Assembly (NCBI RefSeq): GCF_001194135.2
Contig: NC_068985.1
Location: 36,582,305 to 36,640,350 of the forward strand
Direction of reading: 5' to 3'
Source: Octopus bimaculoides
Lineage: Eukaryota
DNA length: 58,046 nucleotides
The notes beneath the pieces were generated by a model that saw only the letters and a program-made list of their open reading frames with translations, was not told the DNA's origin and did no database searches. Numbering within the stretch: the stretch's first letter is position 1; each line of letters opens with the position of its first letter. Shown in pieces: positions 12,301 to 36,600 of the stretch. The translations under genes were made by a program, and so were the position numbers.

Positions 12301-15300
12301 ACTTCCAACTCTACAAACATTTCTGTTTATATTTTCTTTTTTTAACTGCTTTCTCTATTTTTGTAGGATGTTACTCATTTGTCTGGCATGAAAACAGTAT
12401 GGTATTTACTGGAGATGCTGTCTTAATTCGTGGTTGTGGACGAACAGATTTTCAGCAAGGTAATCGAGTTATTCTACACTTAATAACAGTAAAATGTTAA
12501 CAAAGGTTTGTTTCACATATTTTCATCCTAAATATTTATCAATGTCATGATGACCTCAATAACTGAAGTAAAGATACAAATTGTTTTGTTGTTAATTACA
12601 TGTTTGTTGTTGTTCCTTCTTTTAAACCTGTCAGAATCATTAGTGTTGAACAAAATGACTTGTGGTAATTCTTCCAGCTCTTTACATTCTGAGTTCAAAT
12701 CCTGCTGAGATCAACTTCGCCTTTTGTCTTTTGGAGTCAATAATACAGTAGTAGTTAGTAACCTAACCCTTCCTCCCAAATTTTAGGCCTTACACCTGCT
12801 GTATTACAAGCAATTATTTTTGCTGTCAAAGAACGGCAGATAAAAAGAGTGTCAGAAAATATATATTCTGGTGTTTTAGTGACGAGTTTAAATATCACCA
12901 AACTTTCCAGAAATTATTGTGGAAAAAAAGAAAAAGAAAAAAAATCAAGTGAATAAGTGCCACTTATTCTGTTGTTTCAATGCTAGACACTGGGGCTTTG
13001 CACCAGTATAACTGAAACCATGGTTTATAAAGGAACCATTTTCAGAGATATACAACTCAAGAGTTTAATCAGTATCAAAATCAGTAAAGTGTGAATATAA
13101 ATAATGTCTTTGCAGTTCAATACTTCATGTCGGAGTTGTTGGCACTCCGTCGCTAACAACGTTGAGGGTTCCAGTTGATCCGATCAATGGAACAGTCTGC
13201 TCGTGAAATTAACGTGCAAGTGGCTGAGCGTGTACCCTTAACGTAGTTCTCGGGGATATTCAGCGTGACACAGTGTGACAAGGCCGACCTTTTGAATTAC
13301 AGGTAAAACAGAAACAGGAAGTAAGAGTGAGAGAAAGTTGTGGTGAAAGAGTACAGCAGGGTTCACCACCATCCCCTGCCGGAGCCTCGTGGAGCTTTTA
13401 GGTGTTTTTGCTCAATAAACACTCACAACGCCCGGTCTGGGAATTGAAGCCACTATCCTATGACCGCGAGTCCGCTGCCCTAACCACTGGGCCATTGCGC
13501 CTCCATCATATCGGAGTAGTGTGACACAATAGACTACATATGCATTGTCCAATTGCAAAAACGAGTGGAACATAAATACTTTACTTGACAAATAAGAGTT
13601 GGAGTCAGGATGGGCTTTGGCTTGTAGAACATTATCTCAAGGAGTCTCATTCAACCCATGCCATATATGTATGATGATGATGATGATATATCTCGATTGT
13701 GAAGGCATGTGGCTTAGTGGTTTGGGTATTCAGTTCACATTCATAAGGTCAGGGGTGCGATACCTGGCAGTGTGTTATGTCCTTGAGCAAGACACTTTAT
13801 TTCATGTTGCTCCAGTTCACTCAGCTGGTATAAATGAGTAGTACCTGTAATTCAAAGTGTCACCCTCATCACATTCTGTGTAATGCTGAATCTCCCTGAG
13901 AACTATGTCAAGGGCATGCATGTGTGTGGAGTGCTCAGCCACTTGCATGTTACTTTCACGAGCTGGATGTTCTGTTGATCGGATCAACTGGGATTCATTA
14001 CATAACCAACAGAGTGCCAGTTCTATATCTTGATTAATCAATGACGAAAGAAAAGGTGTTATGTTATCAACTTCATTAAGGCGGCGAGCTAGCAGAATCG
14101 TTAGCACACCAGGCGAAATGCTTAGCAGTATTTCGTCTGCCGTTCCATTCTGAGTTCAAATTCCACCGTGATTGACTTTGCCTTTCATCCTTCCGGGGTC
14201 GATTAAATAAGTACCAGATACACACTGGGGTTGATGTAATTCCTTTGTCTGTCCACTCTGTTTAGCCCCTTATGGGCAATAAAGAAACAGTTATCAACTT
14301 CATCAGCTTAGTGCTGTTTTTGCTATAAGAAGCATGCCACTTAGAAGTGAGTGCCTGTGCAGCAGTCTATAAATTCCTCAGAGCTATAAAATGGAAAGAT
14401 ATTGCATAAGCTTTCAGTTCTGAGTTCAACGTTTCTTATAGCAGAAACAGCTGTAAGCTAATGAAGGCGATTACGTAACTCCTTTTGTTTTGTTATTCAT
14501 TGATATTATGCTCTGTATTCTCCTGGCTTTTTACTTTAAAGCATAATACATATTGAATTCTAACAGCTGGTTTTTAATATCACTATGCCTAAGCAAAATC
14601 ATAAAATATAGATCTAACAAAGAATGGTAAACGTCTAGATAAGCAAGGCCCAGTTTATTAGAAATTCTGATATATGATTTTTAACTGTAAATATTATGAG
14701 AGTCAAGACTATTGAAAAGGTTGCAAAACGCAACAAAAATTTTAGGAAAATAAAAATAAGGAATAAGTGGAAATTTTACTGGTGTGTGTGTTAAACTATA
14801 AGGCACAAAAAGAAAATGACTCTCCCCAGACACAACAGATTATGTTCACAGTTTAACCATTTTGCTTTAAATACACCAATACAAACTCTGTAAAGTATGT
14901 ATAAATCTTTTAACTCTATCAACCCTGACAGAGCAGACCAATGATCAAAAGCATTCCAGCTATGATCATCCTCTCTCTCTTTACTGGTTTCAGTCATTTG
15001 ACTGCGGCCATGCTGGGGCACCGCCTTTAGTCGAGCAAATCGACCCCAGGACTTATTCTTTGTAAGCCTAGTACTTATTCTATCGGTCTCTTTTTGCCGA
15101 ACCGCTAAGTTACGGGGACATAAACACACCAACATCGGTTGTCAAGCGAAGTTGGGGGGGACAAACACAGACACACAAACATATATATATATATATATAT
15201 GTACATATATACGTCGGGCTTCTTTCAGTTTCTGTCTACCAAATCCACTCACAAGGCTTTGGTTGGCCTGAGGCTATAGAAGACACTTGCCCAAGGTGCC

Positions 15301-17866
15301 ACGCAGTGGGATTGAACCCGGAACCATGTGGTTGGTAAGCAAGCTAACTTACCACACAGCCACTCCTGCACCTATGTACATTTTGTTTGTCTAGAATAAC
15401 ATTGCACCTTTCCTTTAAGATGTGAGTTAAAGGAATTTGGCTGCTAACTTTGAGGCTCCTTCAAGAGTTAAGAGGCGAACACAGAGCTGTTGTCTTTTAT
15501 CGTGTTCCTTTTAGTGAAATGTAGGCTGTATGAAGCACACATTAGCAGGGTACTACATGATATCAAGGTATAGGTAACTGAATATTGATCTATAGAGGTC
15601 AATTAGGTAAGCATTTTTGCTTTGGATGCATAATATTGATTTCTAACATGGATCTAAAACTTTGAATGTGGAGAGAAAAGTAACTGTTGATTAAAATCCA
15701 ATCTCTGACTGATGCTATATCAAACTCAGAAGGATGAAAGCCAAAATTGGCCTCAGCAGGATTCAAAATCCAAACAAATACCATAAGGCATTTTTGTCCA
15801 AATGCTTTTACCAATTCTTCCCTTTTCGTGGATTGATAATATTAACATGCATAAGAACACTAGTTAGTCTGTCTCAGCTTACTAAATGTTAAAAGAATCC
15901 GTCTGTTTGGAGCAAAGCTTACTGGTATGAGATGTTAAGTGAAAGGACAGTGAGGTGTTCAGTAGAAGACACACACACACTAAGAAAAGATAAAAAATGT
16001 GGTATGGTCAAGTGAGAACTTGAAATTTTGTATCTCATTTATGGATGAAGGACTAGGATGGTTGTCAATATGCTCTAAGACAGACTGAGCAATTTGGGCC
16101 AGCAGGGGGAAAAAAATAAATCACACATTACAGAAAAGTACATTTTAACATATGTATATCATATTTATCAGGCTGTCAAAATTATCAAGCAGGCCAGAAG
16201 TCATTAGCAGATTTAATACAGTTTGGTAACCAAGGTGGTAGCTTCTTAAGGGTTGTCAGTTCATACAGGCATCACCTTTATATCCACATTATCAATTAAT
16301 GTCCACTTTTCCATGCCTCATGAGTCAGACAGAGTTCGAGGCTGAAGTTTCTATGCCATGTCATCAACCCTCACTTGTTTCCAAGTAATATTTTCCCATG
16401 TCCAGACACGTTTTTGGAGTATATTGGAAAACTTTGGACTCATTTACAACTATCACATGATGTCAAGACAAGGAAACTTTCACATTGTTTACCATATCCA
16501 CTGATAAGCATTTCGTTGACCCAGGGCTGTAGCAGAACATTTATGTGCATAAAGTGTCATGCAATGAGATTAAATCCAGAACCATGTGGTTGTGAAGCAA
16601 ACTTCTTACAACACAACTGCACTTAAGCAAAATTCTCAATTCTATAAATTAATCCTGATACCTGTTAATAATTTTCAATGCTGTTTTAATCAGTCAGCAA
16701 TGTTAAGTTCTTACTCCAATTAAAATTTATGTATTGTTTTGTTTTTATATACCTCTAACTTCCTAAGTGCACACACACACACGTTCTTGTTAATTGGAAG
16801 CTATTAAAAGAAATGAATTTATACTCTTTTTTCATTTAGGTTGTTCAGAAACGCTTTATGAATCTGTTCATCGAGAAATATTCAGTCTTCCAAGTCACTA
16901 CCGAATCTATCCAGCACATGATTACACAGGTAAGTTTCGTCATAGCCCCTAGGATACATTAACCTCTTGGGATACCCAGGCTGATTGATTGGCCCAAGTG
17001 ATACAAGCTAAAAAGACTTTGAGGCCGATCCATCGACCTCCTGTGAATGGTTGGTTTTGAAGTGTAATGGCTAATCAATAGATCTCAATAGCAAAAAAAA
17101 TTTGGTCTCTTCGGCTACACATACCAAAACACTATCTCAAAAGGGTTTTAAAAGAGTAAGGATATAAATTCTCATGAATTCACCTTTTTGAAGGAAAAAC
17201 CATCTGTAAATTACTATTTTACATTGTCTATGCTTGCATGGCTCTTAGCACTACATCTTACCATTTGTAAGAACTCTTTATCATCTTTAGGTTCCTTCCA
17301 TATGGATTGCTTAGCACTTTGTCATCTTTCTAGTACACTGCATTACATAATTCCTTTGCCTTGTGCACCCCCCCCTCCCAGCTAATTTGCATTGTTTAAC
17401 AATACATGTTCAATATTGATAAAAATACGCACCTCTCGTGATGGTTTTACAATAACTTATAATTTACTTTTTAGGAAATACAGTTAGTACTATTGCGGAA
17501 GAAAAACAGTTGAACCCTCGTTTAAGACGAACAAAGGAGGAATTTTTGGAAATTATGGCCAATCTGAAACTACCATACCCAAATCAAATTGGTGAGCTCC
17601 ATTTGTATTATACGAATTGTTGAGGTTAAAACTAAATCTATCTTAAATTGTTATAAGTTCTCTTGTAAGTGCAATCTTAGAAACTCAAGTATTGCAATTA
17701 AATCTATTGCTCCAGAAGCAGTTTAAATATGTTAAACCCTTGTGTTGTACTCAAACTTAAATGTCTAATTCAAACATTAGTTTTATTCACTATTCTGTAC
17801 GTTTCTTTTTCAGACAAAGCATTACCTGCTAACTTATTGTGTGGACTTCAACCAGACCTGCCATAA
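9132..17866 (+). CDS. ETHE1: Persulfide dioxygenase ETHE1 (metallo-beta-lactamase fold), spliced CDS join(9132..9276,10317..10502,12367..12459,16840..16929,17475..17591,17814..17866); 5' coding exon not found
   Basis: Manual splicing gives an open 227-aa frame: [27 protein letters not shown]...[14 protein letters not shown]...STPGHTNGC...[19 protein letters not shown]...IYPAHDY...NPRL...[15 protein letters not shown]. The HxHxDH, GHT, TGDA, PAHDY and C-terminal Cys motifs of ETHE1 are present. All introns are GT-AG and phase-compatible. Confidence 0.96.
9258..9319 (+). repeat. 31-bp tandem duplication spanning an ETHE1 5' splice site
   Basis: attaatcttacaattgttggtaagatgctaa followed by attaatcttacgattgttggtaagatgctaa (1 mismatch). 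Confidence 0.9.
10317..10502 (+). CDS. ETHE1: ETHE1 coding exon (186 nt) with metal-binding THVHADH and GHT
   Basis: ttttttttgcag|TCAACACCCAT...ACAAACG|gtaatt; lies within ORF 10286..10669. Confidence 0.96.
11145..11770 (-). mobile_element. RTE-family 3' tail with (ATC)n end and internal 26-bp minisatellite (~11320..11750)
   Basis: catcatcatcatttaa...ccagcatg tail related to 55320..55460; repeated gcactttatatgtggcaccagcatgg unit. Confidence 0.8.
12367..12459 (+). CDS. ETHE1: ETHE1 coding exon (93 nt)
   Basis: ttttgtag|GATGTTAC...CAGCAAG|gtaatc; [30 protein letters not shown]. Confidence 0.96.
13135..13503 (-). mobile_element. Second tRNA-headed SINE family; another copy at 57741..58046 (-) and an older + copy at ~13700..14035
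   Basis: 13165..13460 is near-identical to 57741..58046; the reverse complement starts ggaggcgcaatggcccagtggttagggcagcggactcgcgg (A-box-like). Confidence 0.85.
14080..14290 (+). mobile_element. Third SINE family (ggcggcgagctggcagaa...ttctgagttcaaattcc...); other copies near 34198..34405, 38415..38470, 10700..10870, 11790..11990 and 12630..12810
   Basis: Recurrent head and B-box-like gagttcaaattcc.ccgaggtc.actttgcctttcatcc. Confidence 0.8.
14975..15372 (-). mobile_element. tRNA-derived SINE, full-length copy (dominant family)
   Basis: Reverse complement of ggagtggctgtgtggtaag...ccgggttcaatcccactgcgtggcaccttgggcaag...microsatellite...ggcggtgccccagcatggccgcagtcaaatgactgaaac; same family as 43822, 55467 and 33480. 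Confidence 0.88.
16840..16929 (+). CDS. ETHE1: ETHE1 coding exon (90 nt)
   Basis: ttcatttag|GTTGTTCA...TACACAG|gtaagt; [29 protein letters not shown]. Confidence 0.96.
17475..17591 (+). CDS. ETHE1: ETHE1 coding exon (117 nt)
   Basis: ctttttag|GAAATACA...CAAATTG|gtgagc; [38 protein letters not shown]. Confidence 0.96.
17814..17866 (+). CDS. ETHE1: ETHE1 last coding exon (53 nt incl. TAA)
   Basis: ttctttttcag|ACAAAGCA...CCATAA; [17 protein letters not shown]. Confidence 0.94.
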
Positions 17867-21200: not shown

Positions 21201-24200
21201 GTTTGAACACAAAAATTTTCTGGTGAAATATATTTAAGTACATCAAAGCAATTTTTTCTAGATTAGTCTTTTGCATGCTGATACTTTCAACATGATTTCA
21301 AAGGTTTTTTGTTTTCCAATTAAAATAACTGTAAAAGATATTTGGAAAAACAAAAAAAATATTTGTTTCATCATGGATGACTGACAATGATATTTTTACA
21401 CAATTCTTTAGTTTGTTTTAGCAACCAGAACAACACCTTTTAAAGTATAGTCGATTACATCAATTCCAGTATGTATTCCATCAACACTGAAAGGATGGGC
21501 AAAGTGATATTGGACAGGGTTTCCACTATAAAGAGTTGTAACCAAGTACCACAGAGTAGTTATATATGCCAAAAACGCACTCAAAAGTGGTTTGATTTGA
21601 GCAGGAGACTTTGAGGTGCTACATTATGATAGAAAACTTCAATATTTTTTGATTTCTACTTCACTAGAAATAACTATTTCTAAATATATTTGAAAATAAA
21701 TTTTCAAAAGGTCCTATATATTTTAGGACAAATTTACATTCTTATGACATCTTCATATAATTCTGAAAACAATCCTAAGTATGATGGGCATCTATGTCTG
21801 AAGTAACAATTTGAAGCAAAATCATCTTTCAGAAAATGTAAGTTTAGGTAAAAATTGCCTCAGTAGGAAATTTAAATTAGAAATCAAAATAGTAAAAAAT
21901 TTTGTGATTCCATAAGCTAGAAATTTTTAAATGCTTATATATATGATTGAAACTGGAGTATAATAATCAGGAAATTGGCATTTTGAGTTCCCTTAGATGT
22001 CTAAATATCAACAACAAAGTGCCCAGTCTAAACAGTTTAGGAAAACTTGGCACTAATGTTCAGGAATATTTTAAGAAAACATTGTTGAGGAAATTATGAA
22101 CTGGAAAATGGAAACTGATTCCAAGTACACAATACAGTGCTTCAAAACAGAAAGAAGACACGTATCAGGTAACAGAATGGCAAAAATTAGCAAAAGAGAA
22201 AATTATTTGAAAATGATAAGACATGGAGAATAGGACTAATCTTGTCTGTTACTGCAACATGCTTGATAAAGAATCAATATATTGGCAGTAATTGAACCAA
22301 ACTCATCTTTAACAGAATGCCATGAGATGTATATCAAAATAAAATTATTGCATGACTTATTCATAATGAAATTGCAGCTTTGCAACTATGACAAAATACT
22401 GATTGTACATTTGTCTAGCAGATACAAGCAAGAATAGTCCAGCTAATGTTGGTTACATTCAACAGTTACACCTTTCATAATAAAGTCATGAAAGAGACGT
22501 TCTCATAAGAAAGAAAATTATCTAGAACATCCTCTGTATGAATTTAAGATAAATTTCTGAATTTATTCCTATGGCTTATAATTCAAATAAACATATACAA
22601 AAGTGAAAATATTTATAAATATAAATACAAAAGTTACAGGAAATGAGAAGTTAAGAATATGCAAAGCCCTGGTCCAACAGCAACAGTATATTTAATTTTT
22701 TTTTTTAGTTTGTTTTTAGATATTAAGAAAGTCATTATTGATACAAGCAGAAATGAAGCAATAAAAAAAATTAGATTCAATACAAAGTAAATAGAACTAT
22801 TTCTTTATTAAAATCTATCAAAAGCATGACATTTTAATTATTGATGCTTAAAAATCAAGCATTTTGAGTTAAGTGTTACTTAGAACACAATCTGAATGCC
22901 ATCATTTTTAAGCATTGCCCTTGCGCTTCAGTTAGAAAACAAAATATTTATAATCAAAACTGTATCATTATACATCAACTATACAAAATAAGCTAACAGA
23001 AAGTATCATTTTTAAGAAAAGTGCCATTCTAATTAAACAGACATTTTGATTCTATTAACTTATGTGATAAGAACTTGTCTTTCATTTTAATAGGCATTTA
23101 TCCACTGTTTCACACACATTGGTGTACTCATATATGCTAGAACAGGTCAACAATATTGCTTAAGCATTGACTAAATAGAATTGTGAGTAATGAAGAAAAA
23201 GAATGTTAAAAAAACTGCTTTTAGATAAATAAAACTTCAAAGTAATAATCAACATTTAGGGTGGACATTTGTAAATTATAAACTACCACAAAACCAATAA
23301 TGTTGTCTTTATTTACAGATTATTTATCTTTAGATCATAAAAATGGCAGTACTAATCAATAACTTAATATCTTATTTCCAAATAAACAAAGTTTGACCGA
23401 AATACTATTCAGAAATAATAGAGCAATATACACATATATAAGACTATAACTTTACATTTGAAATAACAAGTGAATTCTTATGTCCTCAATACATTATGGA
23501 ACAATGTACTAGCAGACAAAACTATAAACTAACAGTAGAGACAATGTTAATATTTAGAAATGAACAAAGACTTTGTAACCATTGAGTAAAATAATAAGCC
23601 TTGTCCTGAGAAAACATGAAAAACTTAAAGAAAAAAATATACTGACAAAAGAAAAGATAAATTTAGTGTTATAAACACTAAATATTAAGGAAGAATTTTC
23701 AAAGAATACATAGTCATAAATATACACAAACAGTAATAAACCAAAAAATAACAAAGCTAAGTAAGAGTTGGAGCCCATCTGGCTCTCTCAATATTTTATT
23801 TTTATACTTGCTTATTTATGAAGATTGACATGTGCACACACAAGCTATGACCAAATTTTTATTTAGACTTGAAAAGAATCTTAATTTTTAACATTAACCT
23901 TACATAATTGTCAAATTTCTTCCGTTTAAAATTTTTAAACATCCATTTTCCTCTTTGTAGCATGGATTTACAAATTTGAACATTTTCACACTGTTGGACT
24001 AGTTTCTATTACAGCTAAACATCAGTCCTAATAAAGTAGGAACGGAGCTTTTCAACTCAGCTGAAGCACACATACTTGCCCAGGGGGACACAATATGATG
24101 GCTAAAATAAGGTTTGAATTTGATATCGTGTGCTTCATAATTATTAATAGAAGTTACTACAGAAAAAGAAACATTCATACAGCTTTATACAGATTAGTAC

Positions 24201-27200
24201 AAATCAGAACTTAAATAGCATATGTACTAGTGCTTAGTTTAACAGTAATTAAATGGTATAAATATTAAAGAAGTTTTAGTGAAGCTGTTAGTAGAAGTCA
24301 CCAGCATCAAAGATTAGTCAAGATCAAAAACAAAATACAATAGTATTTTTTTTTGGATTAATTTTGAAAACAAACTTAAATTTATTAGTAATTATTGTTT
24401 GTGGCAGCAACATCAAAGCTTAATATTGCAACAGAAAAACAAGGTTACCTTTTCCATTTCTACATAAACCTCTTCAAAGAATTCATCATAGTGCTGTTGG
24501 ATCTCAAGCTCTCCCATTTGGACTAAACGAAAACAGAGCACCAGCAGATATAGAATAGTGGGATAACAATTATAATACCTATAACCAACAGGCTAGGAGG
24601 AGCACTACACTAGGAATTAGAGTACAAAATAACTATTTTAACAGCTTCAAGTCAACAAACTGAAAAATAATGTATGAAGGAAACAAAAGCTGTAAAATGA
24701 AGTGCATTAGTTTGGGCTGAAAAATGTATGCTAGATGAGTGGAAATGGTATTTTGAATTGTTTAAGTATTTTTATTACAAAAATAATGTGAAACAAGTGC
24801 TTTATTGTAATCTTTAGAAAAATTACAATAAGAAATATCATTTCCACTCAAACTGATCAAATAATCCAACGTTTATCTGCAAATGAAAATAAAAATTAGT
24901 TATTTGAAAAATATTTTTACCAGAGAATGGTGAAAATGACGTACTGGCTGTAAAAGTTGTAAAGCATGATTTGAAAGGTTATTAATTAGAAAACAGAAGA
25001 AAAAAAAAAAAAATCTTTATATCAGCCAAAAGTACTTAACCACCAGCATTCTCTGGTAATAGAAATCCCAAAATTTACAACATGGAAACAATAAGGAAAG
25101 GAAGGAAANNNNNNNNNNGGAAACAATAAGGAAAGGAAGGAAATGAATGATACATATTTCATTTAAATATTTTTGCAAAGAATATCTTGTTTCCATGATA
25201 CAAATTCTGGACTGAAATATTTAGAGCAAGAACAATGAGGAAAAAAAAAAAAAAAAATTGCAAAATAATTGTTTGTTTGTCCTGTGCTAGCGCTGAAAGG
25301 AAAGCAAGAAAGGAGGGTTACCTTGTCCTCTATTTCACAAAATACCTCCTCGAAAAAATCATCAAAATCCTGTTGCGCTTCAACATCGTCCATTGTCACT
25401 GAAAAGAAGTAACAAACATGAAGATATTCCTTCATGGCACAACAGGGAAGGAATGTCATAGTGGCAGTTAAAATTTAGATAGAATAATGGGACAAGAAGC
25501 TTGTAGTTGATTTATAGTGACTAAAGTAACAGGAGGATAACTTGGGACTTGTGAAGATTTCCCCTCGTTTATACAATCCTTGCAGCGTCATGTTAGTGCA
25601 CAGAATTTAATTAATAACTCAAGATCCAAGCAGCGTTAAGGAATTACAGATTATTAAATTTATCGAGATCCACTGTGCAGCATTAATGGAATATGTATAA
25701 TATGTATTTATACAGAATGGAAATAGGAAGGTATTTATCACAACATCTTAAAGTCCAGTTAAAATACTAATTCAACTTAGATTCCTCTGCAGTGCTCAAG
25801 AAGAGAGGTTCATTAGGTATGTCGAGTAATAACAAAACAAAAATAGTGAACCACTAAAAGATTTTTTCTAGACTTTATACCTTAGCTTAACATGCATTTC
25901 AACTATATACATTGCCAAACACATTTTGAGGTTTTAAACAGGTAGAAATGTTTAGTATAATTCTTTTAAAAAATCCACACTATTTGCATGATAAAAAAAA
26001 AAAAGGAATAAAATGAAAACTAAGAATAAAAAAAAAAACCGATTGATGAGGTGAAGATATATTCATGAATATTGAAGTGATTTTTCTCAAAAGAGAATGA
26101 AAATCAGTTTTCAATTTCGTATTGTCACAACGACAAAACTTGTCAAAGTAAATGAAGATTAGAAATAGTAATATATATATATATTTAAATGGTTGCATTT
26201 AAGAGGGGTCAAATTAGTCATAGATATTATAATATATAAAAAACAAGAGTTTGCTTTTGAATCAGTTCTGATCAAGGTTACCTTAATATTTTTGTACTAA
26301 TTATTTTAATATTCCATTGACGAGAACAAGCTGCTAAAATAAGTGCTACTGGCTGCAAGATATTTTTCTTGTTGCCCCAGAGCTAACTTGAATGAATGTG
26401 TTCAAGGATTACAATAGTGAAGAAATCTTAAGTTAAGGAGACAGCTAAGCTAAGTTGATAAAATACCAGAAGAAAAGCTGCTTTAGGGAGCAGTGAACAT
26501 TTACCTTGCTGTCAATCACTGAGCAAGTTAAGCATACAAAGAAAAATGACAAATTGATGATTTTTTAATACAAAAAATGAAAACATTGTATTATGGACAA
26601 TTGTACTATTTTAAAAAATAAATAAATAAATAAAGGAAAGCATAAAAATCAACAAAATACAAGAAGCAAATAATATAAGGATTATATGTAATATGATTTC
26701 ATAACAGCATGGCAATCTTAAGATTTGGCTGTCTAAGAAAGAAAATGGTCAAAACCATTTTATAGATTATAGTTATATGTTTAAAATAATTTTCAATTGA
26801 GTTAGGAAGGAGTGTGTGTGCACGTAAGTATGTGTTTTAGAAACTTCAATTTGATTAGAAATTAGTTGCTGGTACTCCTTCCAAAGGATCACATTGTAAC
26901 TTAAATAATGATATTGCAACAAATCTGGTATTGGTGGTCTTCAAGTAATGAATTCAATGATTCTGAATATAAAATTACAAATCAAATGAAATGATTGCCA
27001 GGCTTTTATGAACACTGCTAAAGCAATAAAAAGAATAAGGCTAATGATAAAGAACACCATGTGGACAAATACAACAATGAAGAATAACAAATAGAAAGTG
27101 ACAGATCCAAAGACATGGAGACAAAGAAGCTGTGTGAAAGTGTTGAAATGGTCACAACAACTAGTAAAACACAAAGACACAGCTTCAAAATTTAGAAGCC

Positions 27201-28465
27201 ATTAATGTACACAAACATGTGGAAAGATAAATGGATAGATCATCTAACAATTTGAAATAAACAGAAGAAAACACAAAATACAATTTAAACAAATTAAAAT
27301 CACAACAATAAAAGTGACAACTCAATATATAATTATTTTGGCTCAGAGAAATTATTATGTAGTTTATTTTTAACAATTGGATAACTTAGATTTCAATATT
27401 CTGTCAACTGGAATAATCAAATTGGTTAATAAAATACCAAACAAGTTGATATATTGTTTTGTCACTGTGAAAAACATTCGAAAGGGTTAGTATACTGTGC
27501 TTAAATGAGATATATACAGAAAACTTTTGAAACAAAAATTTTAAATAACAATTTAATAAGTAGCATGATTTCTTAAATAAGCTGAATTAAAAGTATTAAT
27601 ATACTCTACAAGTAGTTTTTCTTTTAATGTGATAGGTTAATGATTTTCAAATTTTTGCATATAATATTGTTTTTAACAAGTGAATATCATTAGAAATAAA
27701 GAATCAATATTGTATAATTGATCTACATAACATAGCGAGAATAAAGTATTTAATACTGATTTTTTATACTGACACAGGGCCACAAGTTAGTAAGAGAGAG
27801 ACATGGGTCATTTAATTTATAGGATTTGAACTTAGAATATAGAAACAATAAACATATTTTGTTTTGGTACTTCAGAATTTCTATCACTCTCCTTCCTAAT
27901 AATAATTTGAAAGGGAATGAGGCAGGAAGTGGCCCAGCAATGCTAATGAAGATGCTCACCAGTACACAAAGGACAGTTTTATGAGCATGGTATGGTAACA
28001 ATTCATCATTTAAGCAGGTAGTGAAATCTGTTAAAAAATTTATTTTAAAAACTGCAGACATAAGATTTAGTAAGACTACAGTCAGTGGAGAGCACACAGC
28101 ATCATGATTAACAGTCAACTTAAGTGGTAGGTGTTACAAATGTAGTTAGACCTACTTTCTTCTATCACCGGAACTATGCATGTATATGGCTATCTAGCTG
28201 CACTTTAAGATAAATCAAATTCTTGAATATCATTCATAACATTCCAGCAATTCAAAGACGATATATATATATATATTCATTTGCAATTATGATTTCTTAT
28301 AATTCAACAACTCCTTTATTCATATGACCAATTTATACCTAATTCTTAGTCTTGCATTTTGTTTTTAAGATTATGATGTTTAAATAAAAAAGAAAACAGA
28401 CTATATTCATATTTCTTTGTCATTATGTAAAACCTTGAGCACTTCTCATTTATCACAGTATAAAC

Positions 28466-28515
<50 letters not shown>

Positions 28516-30625
28516 TATATATAACCCCACACAAAATTCTCTCTTAAATACAAACACAGCATGCAAGAAGACAATATTGCAAACAAAAATAGAAACCAAT
28601 GAAAAATCCCCCAAAAGTTNNNNNNNNNNNNNNNNNNNNNNNNNNNNNNNNNNNNNNNNNNNNNNNNNNNNNNNNNNNNNNNNNNNNNNNNNNNNNNNNN
28701 NNNNNNNNNNNNNNNNNNNNNNNNNNNNNNNNNNNNNNNNNNNNNNNNNNNNNNNNNNNNNNNNNNNNNNNNNNNNNNNNNNNNNNNNNNNNNNNNNNNN
28801 NNNNNNNNNNNNNNNNNNNNNNNNNNNNNNNNNNNNNNNNNNNNNNNNNNNNNNNNNNNNNNNNNNNNNNNNNNNNNNNNNNNNNNNNNNNNNNNNNNNN
28901 NNNNNNNNNNNNNNNNNNNNNNNNNNNNNNNNNNNNNNNNNNNNNNNNNNNNNNNNNNNNNNNNNNNNNNNNNNNNNNNNNNNNNNNNNNNNNNNNNNNN
29001 NNNNNNNNNNNNNNNNNNNNNNNNNNNNNNNNNNNNNNNNNNNNNNNNNNNNNNNNNNNNNNNNNNNNNNNNNNNNNNNNNNNNNNNNNNNNNNNNNNNN
29101 NNNNNNNNNNNNNNNNNNNNNNNNNNNNNNNNNNNNNNNNNNNNNNNNNNNNNNNNNNNNNNNNNNNNNNNNNNNNNNNNNNNNNNNNNNNNNNNNNNNN
29201 NCTTCTAAAAATGATTTTTCTAGTTAATTTCTTTCAAAATGACATAACACTAAGCAACCGCTAAAAGTTATGGAATAAAAAAAAAAAATCAATTAAAAAA
29301 ATGTCAACTAAACAAAAATTTGCTATACAAATTCTTGCTAGATGAACTAAAGTATAAAATTTTCATATACACATCCACTAATATCAAATTAATTTGACCC
29401 AAATTGTACTGTTTACATTTAAAGAGGTTTTTAGATCTTTCAATATTTCAATCATAAACAGTCTATAAATAATCGAAATATCTGCTTAGCTTCCAACACT
29501 GGAATTTTATAGTTTGATATTACATGTGTTCTATGATTTAAGACAGAACATACTTCAATTATAGGTACCCCTTTGTCTCAATATGTCATGCAAACAGCAC
29601 AAATTGGTCTGGCTGGCAGAGAGATAGTGGATCACCTAATTATTGGAATAATCAAGAGTAGATAAATACAACCAGCACAAAATGTCTTGTCAAAAGACAC
29701 ATTTTCAGTAAAAGTTTAATTTACATTCCCTGAGTGTACTAATGTATTAATTTATGTATTATTGACTAAATGTCCAAAACACTGTAAAACGAGTGAAGTG
29801 ATTTGGACATTGAGTCCCTCGTCTTTCCTGGACACTCTCCCTTAATGTGGTATTTTGACCCTTTTTTAAAAGATGGAGTTAAAAAATCATGTTAGTTCAT
29901 AAGTGAGTGCACCAGCCATTTGAAACATTAAATGTCCCGGTTCTTTAGTGATTTGCAGAGTGCATGGGCCAAAAGTTGCACATGTAACATAGGGGCCATT
30001 GAAACAAAGTTCTAAAATCCATCCCCCTAGCTTGGTTTCCATTTTGGCATACTGTGAATAAAGCCCCGTTTGTTTCCTTCTTTTTCATAAACTGTGATAA
30101 GGAACTTTTCAGCTTGTCTTCTTTTTGATCTCCAGTTGCTCACCATTTCTATTACTGTCACACCAAACTCATTTGGCTGCACTTTCTTTTCGTATACTTG
30201 ATTACTTTCAGTGTGAATTTCGCATAGTTCTGCTTTCTCTTCTGTGACATGATGTTTGGAATATATTTACAGTTTTATAAACTGATGAGCAGGAATGATT
30301 TTATTTTTATTGACTAACAAAGAACGCTAACTTAAAATGTGTAAAAACTAATTACACAATCTTTTTATTGTATTTTAATTGCCATATTTAATATTAAATT
30401 AACCTATCAGCCAATTAGAACACACCTAAGTTTCACCACACATCCACTTATTGATGCATTGTTATGTCAGCCAATTAACATCAAGGGGATGGGGGGTCTG
30501 AAGCCATATTGTTAGTATGTCCAGTTTGCATTACTCACTAACATCAAACGTTAATCCAAAAAGAGGCAGAGTTTGCTCAATTTAATCAGATAATGAAATA
30601 CAGGAGATTGCAAACTGGAGAGAAA

Positions 30626-30676
<51 letters not shown>

Positions 30677-33600
30677 AAAGAAAAAAAAAGAAACTCATTA
30701 AAACATTTATGTATTCTTTTTAATGTTTATCCGATTTGTCTTGTAATGGATCATAGACTGCCACTTACCTGTTTCTAATTCCGGTCCAAAATTGAATGTT
30801 TAAATGCAGTCGATCAAAAACAAACAAAAATGCCTATTAATTCATTTTATTTCATATTTTCCGCAATAAAATTTTAAAAAATACTAATGTAAGAAAATAT
30901 TAATGTTGGGTATCAATTGAGAGTACATTTCACTAATTAAACAGCTATGATGAGCACTGTCATTTCACCAAGTGACAGTGAATTTAAAGCTCAAATGGCT
31001 GGTGCACTGCTTTATGAACCGACATAATTTTTAAAAAATCCCTTAAAAGATATATCTGATTACTAGGTCTTGTGTATATGACAGCCCCAGTTGATTTTTA
31101 ACCCTCAACCTGATGGAAAAATCAAATGGTAAGGGTTGATGTACTGAATGGAGTACGTAAAATTTTCCTTATAGAAATTTGACTTTTAGTTGGGAAAGAA
31201 AACAAAAACCTAGCAGTAATTGTTAACAACTCTTAAGAAAAGGTAAGATAATTGCAAGAAATAAAAAATAAAAAAAAATAATAATAATAAAAAAAACATG
31301 CTTACAGGAAAATTTTTGTATGTCAAAAGGAATAAGTCAGTAATTTGAAATGTAAAGTATACCTATTTTGGATAAACATACAATTTTAAAATCACTGTAA
31401 AGTGTAAACAGTGGTTTACACCAAAGGCTCTTGTCACCGTGGAAAGAAAACGCAGGATTATCTAACTAGTTTCTAGTCTTCTTAACCTTAATCAGAGAAA
31501 GTATCCATCTGTCCACAAAGCGGATTAGGAGCTTAGAGCTATTTACAGTGTATGGAAAATAGGGATTCAATTAAACTGGTCCTGCTCATTTGCATAACAG
31601 TTCATGACCCGATATGCTTAATATATGATACAGCATTTTAGATAATTTTGTAATGTATGCCATTTTGTTTTGATAACCATAATAGTAAAATAATAACCCT
31701 GTTGTCAGCATATGCTTTATTAACGCAAGTTAAACAAACCAGTCGAACTGACTTCTAGTTTCTATACACTAAAGTTATAAGCAATCACTCTTTACGTGAA
31801 AAGATGAGTATATTTTCTGTTTATGGTCTAAGACTCAAAACTAACCAGATCAATCCCACTTTTTGTCTACAGAAAGATTAAAACCAAATGCAACCACTAT
31901 TTTTTACAGTAATGCTAAAATTGTATGTTTATCAGAAAGAGGTTTGCCATATATTTCAAATTATCCAAAATACTATGCAGTGCATTATTAAATAGTTCAC
32001 CTAGTGGTTTGTCATTAGAAAGTGTCCAATTCTAAACTATTTAAAAACCTCTTAAAGTTCTTGTTTACATTCAACACAACAAACTAGGAAGGGACCTAAC
32101 TTGACATAAAGTAAAAGATCACACATTTCCTATTCCTTTAAAACAAAACTTCCTAAACTGCTAATCTGCCAAAACTTAGAAATAAAGGCCTTTTTAAACT
32201 TCTAAAATTTCTGTAACATCAGTTAAAAGTAATATTTTTTAAATGTTTTAAAAATGATTCTAAACTTTATTTCTAATTAAGGATTTTTATCAAATATACT
32301 ATGAAGAATAATGTAATTTCCAAAAGAAAATAATTTTGAATATTATTTAAAACACTTTATTCAAATTTTCATCGTTCTGCAATATTTTGATAATTTTTAG
32401 ATTTACAAAAATAAAATAATGCATTTGCCATATTACTTAAGCTGCATTTTAACGAAAATAAGTTAAATTGTAGTCATAAATAGAAAAAAAAAAAATACAA
32501 ATCAAATATTTCAAAAAAATAATTTGATAGTTTCAGTTTAAGACAGAAAGAAACCTAATTTTACACACTATTATTATTATATACCTATCATTAGGTCTAC
32601 TAAGCCCCTGTAAAATGATAGTATTTACACTAACTGTGCTTATCAGATTAAAGAAAAAAAAAAAAAGGGCTATTTACTAATTGGCACAAACTTCCATAGG
32701 CTTCCAGGATAGGATGATGAATGACTTACCAGGAACTGCAAACAAAAAAAAAATCACTATATGAGGGGGCTCGCAATTTTGATTTCTTACACAGAAATGA
32801 TACAATATTAAAATAACATCCATATATACATTATTCAATATATAAATTTTATATAACAGAGTTGAAGGAATACTCTGAACTGAAATTATTTTAAAACTGT
32901 ATATGGAAATATTTTATCATTAAAGAAACTTGTAGTGTTGCTATCATAAAATGTAACAAAAGGTTTATCACCAATACTTACTATGAGAGCCATCAGCTGT
33001 AAGAGCAGCATTTTGGGGATTTAGGTACAGATTCTGTAGCAGTACTGTCTATATGAAGAAAGAAAAAAAAACAATTGTTATGAAGATGCTTATAACTAAT
33101 TTTTCATTCATAAAACAAATCAACAACACTCATGCTTTAAATTCCTCTTGTACTGCTTTCACTATCACTACATTGAAAATATTCAGCCAGAAAGCAGAGT
33201 AGCTACGAGGTAAAAGTAGTGAACAATACTGGCTGCTTGATCATGAACTTAAATACTCTGCCAATTAAAATGTAATGGCTCTAGTAAAGGCATATAGCCA
33301 TTTGCTAAATATTCATGGTTGATAAATAGCACATCAACTTCATGATAAAATACAAGTAGAATCCAACAAAAATACTTGCTTCATTATGACTTGTGACATA
33401 CAAAGCCACAATGTAAAGTGGGGAGGTAAGACAAGCAGGCAAATATAAGTAAAAGCAAAATATCCGAAACAATCTATAGATGCAGCCGTAGCAGTGTGGT
33501 TAAGAAGTGCAACCACATGGGTTCAGGTAGGTCTCATTGCTTGGCACATTGAGCAAGTGTCTTCTACTCTAGCCATTGTCCAACCAATATCTTGAATATG

Positions 33601-36600
33601 GTAGATGGAAGACTGTATGGAAGCCCATATAAATGTCTATCTTTTGTGTTTGTCCCTCTGACTGCTTGACAACCAGTTACAACCCCATTGGCAAAAGAAG
33701 CAGATAGAGTTAGGAAAGAAAAGAAAAATTTAAAAAAAAAGAAGTACTAGTGTCTATTTGTTTGACTAAACTCTTTGAGGCAGCATCCTTGCATGGCCAG
33801 TTCAATAATGACTAAAACCAGTAAAAGATGAAAGATAACCTAACAATAAAGAACATTGCAAACCTAAGTTTTAAAAGCATTCAAATGTTTAATATTTATT
33901 TCTTCTATAAACATAAAGTTAATAATTGAAAAGGGATTATATATTCAGACAAAATGATGCCAGAGTATTTCAGGTGCTTATTTTAACCTTCAGATCCAGA
34001 ACAAAGAGAAACAGCATTAAATGCTGTAAGTTATCTAATTTGATACCACACTGTTTCTGCCAAATTGCAGTCAGTATATTTTAAACATTACCATATGAAA
34101 TCAGTTTATGATTAATTATTCATGTTTTAATGTCTGTTAATTAGAACCATGTGGAGAGCCAACCATAATAATTGTGGTAATATATTGCAGAATAAAGGCG
34201 GCAAGCTGGTAGAAACGTTAGCATGTCGGGCCATCTTTATGTTCTGAGTTCAAATTCCACCGAGGTCAACATTGCTTTTCATCCTTTCGAGGTTGATAAA
34301 CGAAGTACCAGTTGCATACTAGAGTCATCTAATCACCCCCACCTCACCCCGAAAAAAAAAAAAAAGAAATTCAGGCCTTGCATCTAGAGCAGAGAAGAAT
34401 CTATTGCAGAATAGCCTAAAGTAACTGTCAGGTGGAACAAAGAATTTACAGTGTCACTCACAGTTAATCACAACATAAGGTTCACACACAGACACCAACA
34501 AAATTTACAGAAAATTGAATAAGCTAAATAAAATAAAAAGACATAGGTGTGACTGTGTGGTAAAAGTTTGCTTCCCAAGCACATGGTTCTAAGTTCAGTC
34601 CCACTGCATGACAAAAAGGGCAAGTGTCTTCTTTGATAGCCTTGGGTCAACAAAGACTTTGAGTGACTGAAAGACAACCAAATATATGTGAGTGTTTACG
34701 TCCCCGTAATTTAGCAGTTCAGCAAAAGAGACTGGATAGGATAAGCATTAGGCTTAACCTTTTCGATACTGACCCGGCCGTAGCTGGCTGAAAAATTTTT
34801 TGGTTCATAAGACCAACCCAGCCGTAGCAAGCCGAGAGTACCCATTGTTATTGAAATGTGAATTTAAGCACAAATCTTCTTAGTACATTTGTGAAAATGT
34901 GTGATTTCACTTTGTAAATAGTTGAGTTATAGTATCCATTTGAAAATGGATAGGAGTTACATGCTATCAAGCAGTGATTCCAAATTTAAGGGTTTTTCAA
35001 CGGAAAATATGGAGATATCGAGAAAAAGAATGAATGAGGTACAAAAGCACATGGTGTACGAGAATGAATAGGATATTTTTGTATCCGAAACCAAAAGCAG
35101 CAATAGTGACATCAAAGACGATTTTACATTGGAATAAAGTACAAACTTTAAAAATGTTTTTATTAGCAATTTTTCTGAGATGGGGTCTATCCATAGTCTT
35201 TCTTAGGAAGCAAAACCGTTAGACTTTTTGAAGAGATCACTGCGGAAACAAACAGTATTTGCCAGAAAAGCCCATGAAATGGGGGAATCTAAGTTTGGAA
35301 AATTTGTGAAGCAAATACTGGGTACTGCTGTGGATTTAGTTTTTATACAGGGAAAATAATGTTAGTCAGCTTGGGTACAATGTGGTCTGGAATTTATCAC
35401 TTCCATACCATAACCAGGGCTGTATATTATTTTTTGACTGATTTTTTTTTAGTTCGATGAAACTTGCAGTGGATTTCAGTATTTCAGTTTATTTCACCTT
35501 TATGGGTCACCTGTTCTGTTGTGCATTAAATTTCAACTGATAATCTAGTGATGTGCACAATTCTTCTGTATCAAAATTTAGTTGCATACCCAATTGAATA
35601 TTAGCTGAGGATTCATTTTCAATGGTGATGTTTAAACAAAATTTTAATAATTTTACCTTGTGCTCAGTTTATCTGGATTTACCTGTAATTAGAGTCACTT
35701 TGAGATAAAAGTTATGCAATAGAATTGATTAAGTACCCATTCTTTAATTATGTTCCAAATATCACATATGTTGATAAGTAAAAAAAGTTTCAGTTGCTTA
35801 ATGAAACTAGTCTAAATTCATGATGATTTTAGAATTTAATTGAAACTCATGAGGGGTGTATTTTGGTCAGAAATATAGTAACGAAAGGGTTAAGAAAAAA
35901 AAACTGGGGTTGATTCATTCAACTGACAATGTTTCAAAATGATGTTCATATTGAAATAGTGCAACAGCTTGAGTAGGTTGAAAAAAAATGAGAAAATAGC
36001 AAAATTTACATACCTGACTGAAAGTGGGTTTGTTGTGCAGGCGAGAACATCTTTCTCCATGTCTACAAGCTCCAATTTTGAAGTAAAAGGAACAATTAAC
36101 CCTTGAAAGGAAATTAAACACAAGTAAATTCACTGAAAACGAAATCATATGCCAAATAAAGGAAAGTAAAACAGCTTTCAAATTAGCATAAAAAATAATG
36201 ATTACCACTGAAATTTCTTTTGTGAACATTAAAATCATTCACTACCATTAACATATCTTTACTAAAATTGTATACATGTTAGCACTATGAAAAACAAAAC
36301 AGTTTCATAGCATGATTAAGAAATCATACAATATAGGAACTGCACTCGGCCACAAGAAAATGGTATGTCATTTGGAGTACAACAATGTTATTAAGTGGAG
36401 TCATGGTTTCAGAATAAAGCCATTAAGATTTTATACCAGTGTAATAAGAATGGCTAAAAAGAATGTCAGCTTTTATTTCATGAATGCAAAAAGGGAAAAA
36501 CAATCCTTAATTATAAAACAGTAGCCAATAAGATGGATTGTACATGGAATTCAAAAAGGTATAGCCTTTTCACATAGTTTCATGTAAATTCAACTTGGGA

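Follow-up and report, generated by a model that had tools for sequence, protein, structure and literature searches.

The window analyzed here, the whole 58,046-nucleotide stretch of Octopus bimaculoides DNA, is 100% identical to CM046605.1 of that species. Its minus strand carries U2AF1 (U2AF35) in full, and the exons of the gene were located by tblastn with human U2AF1 and exact exon mapping. Exon 1 (39129-39086), exon 2 (36101-36014), and the 67-nt coding exon 3 (33048-32982) are followed by two versions of the fourth exon, 4a (25398-25322, 77 nt) and 4b (24522-24449, 74 nt), and then by exons 5 (20573-20502), 6 (18611-18478), 7 (18393-18295), and 8 (18203-18023), all on the same strand. Exons 4a and 4b are mutually exclusive, and use of both shifts the reading frame. 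Exon 3 ends with ...TADGSH plus the first base of the following codon, at the donor ATA/GTAAGT. Two 6-nt elements lie on the minus strand in the intron that separates exon 3 from exon 4a. The first, microexon 1 (TTCCTG, 32730..32735), is present in RefSeq isoforms and in spliced transcript contigs; the second, microexon 2 (AAACAG, 30769..30774), was found by pattern search and in RefSeq isoforms. Self-BLAST showed the flanks of the microexons to be single-copy within the window, a tandem-repeat scan of 24000-34000 returned only simple A/T-rich repeats distant from both elements, and a comparison with Rfam gave no match anywhere in the window.

An intron of exactly 246 nt (32736..32981, minus strand) separates exon 3 from microexon 1. 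The minus strand between 32757 and 32724 reads gtgaTTTTTTTTTTgtttgcag, then TTCCTG, then gtaagt, which confirms the pattern given in the preliminary description of this DNA, namely a U10 tract with a UGCAG acceptor and a near-consensus donor on either side of six nucleotides, 246 nt after exon 3. The acceptor has the form U10-GUUUGCAG, in which T10 (32753-32744) is followed by G, by UUUGC (UGC at 32740-32738), and by the AG at 32737-32736, and the donor CUG/GUAAGU has its GTAAGT at 32729-32724 (GT at 32729-32728). Together with the exonic CTG, this donor matches the consensus CAG/GTAAGT at 8 of 9 positions; within U2AF1, it ranks below the donor of microexon 2 alone and equal to that of exon 2. 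Pyrimidines occupy 13 of 17 acceptor positions, 6 nt separate the end of the U10 tract from the AG, the AG-free zone is 19 nt, and UGC occurs at -5 and -40. These signals rank with the best of any exon in U2AF1. Being 6 nt long, the element is a multiple of three, keeps the frame, and creates no stop codon. It is a separate exon bounded by AG and GT and lies 7.3 kb from exon 4a. That the insert might arise from an alternative 5' or 3' splice site was considered and rejected, since the six bases are distant from both adjacent exons.

To evaluate how frequent such patterns are, both strands were searched for a pyrimidine-rich tract followed by YAG, 3-27 nt, and GTRAGT, and the count was compared with that in Markov-simulated sequence. 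Five microexon-like patterns were observed in the window against 2.26 ± 1.5 expected from the simulation, and a pattern of exactly 6 nt was expected 0.085 times per window. Pattern statistics by themselves are weak evidence for microexon 1 and are not enough to establish an exon. The case consequently stands on gene models and transcripts, which are decisive.

Inclusion of microexon 1 changes the peptide at the junction from GSH-M-TM to GSH-IPV-TM with exon 4a and from GSH-I-QM to GSH-IPV-QM with exon 4b. The in-frame microexon and both IPV peptides had been proposed from the DNA, and both are matched exactly by public isoforms. The isoform predicted from microexon 1 and exon 4a is 100% identical over 255 amino acids to XP_029636792.1 (O. 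sinensis isoform X3) and XP_014773175.1 (O. bimaculoides isoform X2, 2015 annotation), and the IPV isoform containing exon 4b is that of XP_029636793.1 and XP_014773176.1. Microexon 1 is also included in the original O. bimaculoides gene model (A0A0L8HDI9 in UniProt/UniRef, which reads GSHIPVQMGEL), in the O. vulgaris model (GSHIP-), and in all seven older Octopus RefSeq isoforms (three of three in O. bimaculoides from 2015 and four of four in O. sinensis). Microexon 1 is accordingly not a new candidate: it is already annotated and has been in O. bimaculoides RefSeq since 2015. No U2AF1 microexon, and no cephalopod microexons in U2AF1, were described in the papers searched.

The sole skipped form recovered is the RefSeq model XP_052824283.1 (P0003), from the newer O. 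bimaculoides annotation, in which exon 3 is joined directly to exon 4b. It is the only product on record for the locus (L003, 3001-24107) in an index that holds only the longest product per gene, and from this single product the newer annotation appears to be without any microexon-containing isoform. It looks as though microexon 1 was dropped between annotation releases. The skip is what would be expected if read aligners had missed a 6-nt exon, and the model may represent either a real isoform or such an artifact. Automated annotation is thus unstable for exons of 6 nt, the 2015 and original models including microexon 1 and the newer model dropping it, and a reading of the sequence by itself can spot a true exon of this size.

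The junctions diagnostic of microexon 1 inclusion are CATATTCCTGTG with exon 4a and CATATTCCTGTC with exon 4b; those diagnostic of skipping are CTCATATGACAATGG and CTCATATCCAAATGG, respectively, and those diagnostic of the joining of microexons 1 and 2 are TTCCTGAAACAGTG and TTCCTGAAACAGTC. Seven RNA-seq runs, independent of one another, yielded spliced contigs (L005-L011) encoding a protein that contains GSH-IPV-QM (P0123). A related protein (P0004), which also contains GSH-IPV-QM, is encoded by contigs of two Tara Oceans metatranscriptome assemblies (L001 and L002), and the IPV insert is found in four further variants (P0125, P0126, P0127, and P0082). The contigs L001, L002, and L005-L011 read from exon 3 through TTCCTG or TCCCTG into exon 4b, which places microexon 1 in mature mRNA. 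The preliminary description had named junction-spanning reads as the evidence on which the exon would stand or fall, and the CATATTCCTGTC junction is present in the Tara contigs. Tissue or species metadata were found for two of the seven runs, namely SRR19578102, sequenced from Sepia esculenta juveniles (PMC9538352) where companion papers using this run describe larvae, and SRR1386223, likewise from S. esculenta (PMC6906322). The non-octopus contigs with microexon 1 comprise at least four distinct nucleotide sequences, and the carriers in all are Octopus species, S. esculenta, and three or more other cephalopod sequences.

Exon 4b follows microexon 1 in all of the transcript contigs recovered, and no transcript-derived 4a form was recovered among the cephalopod clusters or by two short-query protein searches. 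Skipped forms were likewise absent from the transcript-derived cephalopod protein clusters recovered, in which all full-length members include IPV, and the two short-query searches for fragments returned no cephalopod skipped junction; assembled contigs report the dominant path only, such that a minority skipped isoform would be invisible in them.

The contigs are ∼85% identical to the octopus sequence overall and ∼60% identical at third codon positions. Microexon 1 reads TTCCTG in most of the contigs and TCCCTG in two, the difference being a synonymous change of the Ile codon from ATT to ATC. That third-position identity is low and yet the only change in the microexon is synonymous shows purifying selection on the peptide between octopus and the cuttlefish-type animals. 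In O. sinensis, both microexons and their splice signals are identical to those of O. bimaculoides, but the intron is 91% identical overall, and this comparison is therefore uninformative on conservation. Of the conservation in squid and cuttlefish that had been put forward as a check on the hexamer and its flanks, the part concerning the hexamer stood, as TTCCTG or TCCCTG in cuttlefish-type mRNAs; identity of the splice signals was seen for O. sinensis, within that 91%-identical intron. The introns of scallop and abalone, which were searched after exon 3, contain no comparable microexon, although the 4a/4b pair is present in both. Within the molluscs examined, these sequence comparisons make microexon 1 look like a cephalopod addition.

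Microexon 2 lies 1.96 kb downstream of microexon 1 and reads ag/AAACAG/gtaagt (30774-30769, minus strand). It adds Glu-Thr and, together with microexon 1, gives GSH-IPETV, a peptide found in O. sinensis isoforms X1 and X2 and in isoform X1 of the 2015 O. bimaculoides annotation. Its donor, CAG/GTAAGT, matches the consensus at all nine positions. Its acceptor has only 8 pyrimidines in the 17 local positions, and a distal pyrimidine tract is found at 30830-30816, with UGC at 30808-30806 (-34) and an AG-free zone of more than 58 nt. Microexon 2 is absent from every cuttlefish-type (decapodiform-type) transcript contig recovered, and it is a truly optional element. Its existence bears on the isoform count: the figure of up to four isoforms, given for microexon 1 in combination with 4a/4b, is an undercount because the IPETV forms add more. 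The rest of the isoform diversity comes from the choice between exons 4a and 4b.

A candidate cassette exon was also noted at ∼30144-30241 (minus strand), with 91% amino acid identity to an exon in an O. vulgaris RefSeq model (P0231) that reads GSHIP-EEKAEL...IEMQ-VTMDD. In this window, the donor ATG/GTGAGC gives the exon a length of 98 nt, which would shift the frame and lead to a TGA at the start of exon 4a; judged from the sequence, it is possibly a poison exon.

U2AF35 recognizes the AG of the 3' splice site. The microexon 1 insert corresponds to residues 67-69 of the protein, where Ile-Pro-Val replaces Met or Ile and lengthens the loop by two residues. In the AlphaFold2 model, which is of low confidence (mean pLDDT 53.7, with the loop below 50), a strand at 42-49 and a helix at 73-94 enclose this segment, so that the insert falls in the loop joining strand beta1 of the UHM domain to helix A. 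The segment is an indel region relative to the Schizosaccharomyces pombe U2AF23 structures 4YH8 and 7C06 and lies within the human UHM structure 1JMT; the model and the comparison with U2AF23 thus agree with the earlier placement of the insert before helix A. The length of this loop is naturally variable across animals: between ADG and DVE, vertebrates have six residues, as does the octopus form that skips the microexon, and arthropods have eight, as does the octopus form that includes it. The insert, the optional two further residues, and the 4a/4b alternatives all fall on one loop-and-helix surface of the UHM domain, which suggests that cephalopods tune this surface.

Small inserts at the same exon 3/4 junction were also seen elsewhere (P0008, P0018, and P0039, from oyster and hemichordate, and P0017 and P0019). 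An alternative 5' splice site farther downstream (A/GTAAAT...) would fit an SK(F/L/I) insert, and a NAGNAG acceptor would fit an IV insert in oyster. Small differences in length seem to arise repeatedly at the exon 3/4 junction.

Human U2AF1 exon 3 is 67 nt long, and the octopus exon resembles that of vertebrates both in this length and in intron phase. In vertebrate U2AF1, exons Ab and 3 form a mutually exclusive pair that yields U2AF35a and U2AF35b (PMC5224494). The octopus and vertebrate genes are alike in that isoform diversity resides in the same N-terminal part of the U2AF35 UHM domain, but the Ab/3 pair is a duplication of the 67-nt exon 3, whereas molluscs have instead duplicated the next exon, giving 4a and 4b. 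A further difference from vertebrates is that in cephalopods the intron between exons 3 and 4 contains one 6-nt microexon or two. The 4a/4b pair was located in the scallop and abalone loci (L025, 7594-7665 and 8917-8988; L026, 12520-12594 and 13011-13082). Isoforms from bivalves, gastropods, and a chiton likewise show the pair. Four gene models from mussel, oyster, and dog-whelk (P0006, P0007, P0012, and P0036) carry 4a-type and 4b-type segments in tandem and are probably annotation errors at the mutually exclusive pair.

Taken together, the gene models and transcripts are best explained, in our judgment with fair though not full confidence, by a genuine coding 6-nt microexon of U2AF1 that predates the split between octopus-type and cuttlefish-type animals and is included in most or all mature mRNAs, not in neural ones only. 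Inclusion dominates in the contigs assembled from whole juveniles or larvae, and in those from plankton metatranscriptomes as well, larvae being neural-rich and the evidence consisting of contigs only. Because contigs report the dominant isoform, this leans against strict neural restriction, and on these sequences microexon 1 appears to be broadly included in transcripts rather than confined to nerve cells.

Constitutive or broadly included coding microexons are defined with help from a short flanking intron. Microexon 1 resembles them in its strong sites on both sides, in its short neighboring intron of 246 nt, in its presence in every transcript assembly recovered, and in its deeply conserved peptide. 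One gene model skips it, in contrast to that class, and its constitutive status is here a reading. On balance, our comparison would place microexon 1 nearer to the broadly included microexons than to the neural eMIC class.

A normal exon-definition complex has U2AF at the acceptor and U1 at the donor, and a 6-nt exon has no room for both. As the exon is too small to be defined across itself, recognition through strong signals and the short intron is proposed. The signals, a U10 tract immediately ahead of UGCAG and a donor that agrees with the consensus at 8 of 9 positions, are unusually strong and probably account for recognition of microexon 1. The 246-nt upstream intron would be removed first, by intron definition, fusing microexon 1 to exon 3 into a 73-nt exon with a consensus donor. 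That donor would then pair with exon 4a or 4b across an intron of 7-8 kb. The eMIC domain might contribute through UGCAG but would not be required.

The principal alternative, which we consider rather unlikely, is that microexon 1 is alternative and neural-enriched and that its inclusion is driven by the eMIC domain of a cephalopod Srrm234 protein binding the upstream UGC. The eMIC programme has been described as dating back to the bilaterian ancestor and as working through U2AF1/2 and SF1 (PMC8797185), and the system for comparison is the set of SRRM4/eMIC neuronal microexons, such as the 6-nt exon 34' of TAF1 (PMC6948980; PMC8797185; bioRxiv 10.1101/2024.09.17.613571). Microexon 1 is like these in being a frame-preserving 6-nt exon in a core gene-expression factor, in having UGC just before the AG (with a second UGC at -40) and a very strong, near-consensus donor, and in inserting two residues in a surface loop; the one RefSeq model that lacks it (P0003) also fits this alternative. 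The layout of the acceptor is, however, a different one. SRRM3/4-dependent microexons typically have a pyrimidine tract and branch point that are displaced upstream, with UGC between (bioRxiv 10.1101/2024.09.17.613571). The UGC elements and the strong 5' splice site (8/9) of microexon 1 agree with this layout, but its pyrimidine tract adjoins the AG and its AG-free zone is a short 19 nt. Inclusion, moreover, seems to be general: microexon 1 is present in all whole-larva and plankton transcript assemblies and in seven of seven older Octopus RefSeq isoforms. The neural-specific axis raised as a possibility in the preliminary description is thus unsupported, inclusion being found in all transcript-derived full-length cephalopod sequences and in those seven isoforms, with a strong acceptor besides.

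It is distinctly improbable that microexon 1 is instead alternative under some non-neural form of control, for instance by developmental stage or through a link with the choice between 4a and 4b. The constant 4b partner and the lack of a 4a form among the transcript-derived sequences recovered are in keeping with such coupling, and a model that skips microexon 1 and uses 4b exists (P0003), but RefSeq models pair microexon 1 with both 4a and 4b, and the transcripts recovered show no skipping. A chance splice-site-like pattern (a pseudo-exon) or annotation artifact absent from mRNA has a negligible probability: some two such patterns are expected per 58 kb and the O. sinensis intron is too similar to be informative, but this reading is already refuted by spliced contigs: at least nine independent assemblies from several species show the hexamer exactly where exon 3 meets exon 4b, with a synonymous change in one contig group.

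With microexon 1 read here as genuine and broadly included, microexon 2 is, on sequence grounds, the stronger candidate for regulated or neural inclusion. Microexon 2 has the displaced tract and long AG-free zone that microexon 1 does not, and matches the SRRM4/eMIC cis-architecture much better; with this classic SRRM/eMIC acceptor layout, it would be the likelier eMIC target of the two. That the tandem U2AF1 microexons, and microexon 2 in particular, are targets of an eMIC/Srrm234 neural programme is nevertheless a conjecture that we regard as doubtful. If it were true, the machinery that splices microexons would, in the nervous system of cephalopods, be reshaping a protein that is at once its partner and its antagonist, since U2AF35 both binds the eMIC domain and represses the microexons that depend on it (PMC8797185). 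Such a feedback loop is not known to have been described in any animal. A regulated microexon inside U2AF1, if shown, would be of interest because the eMIC domain binds U2AF1/2, together with SF1, and U2AF1 represses eMIC-dependent exons (PMC8797185). As microexon 1 is already in public models and tissue regulation is only hypothetical, the immediate significance is modest.

Directly downstream of U2AF1, a Lactamase_B-domain gene lies at ∼15023-17866 on the plus strand, in convergent orientation. Sepia contigs L006 (1033-1758) and L007 (1004-1972) join the 3' ends of U2AF1 and the Lactamase_B-domain gene, indicating that the tail-to-tail arrangement is kept in octopus and cuttlefish; the 3' UTRs of the two genes probably overlap in both.
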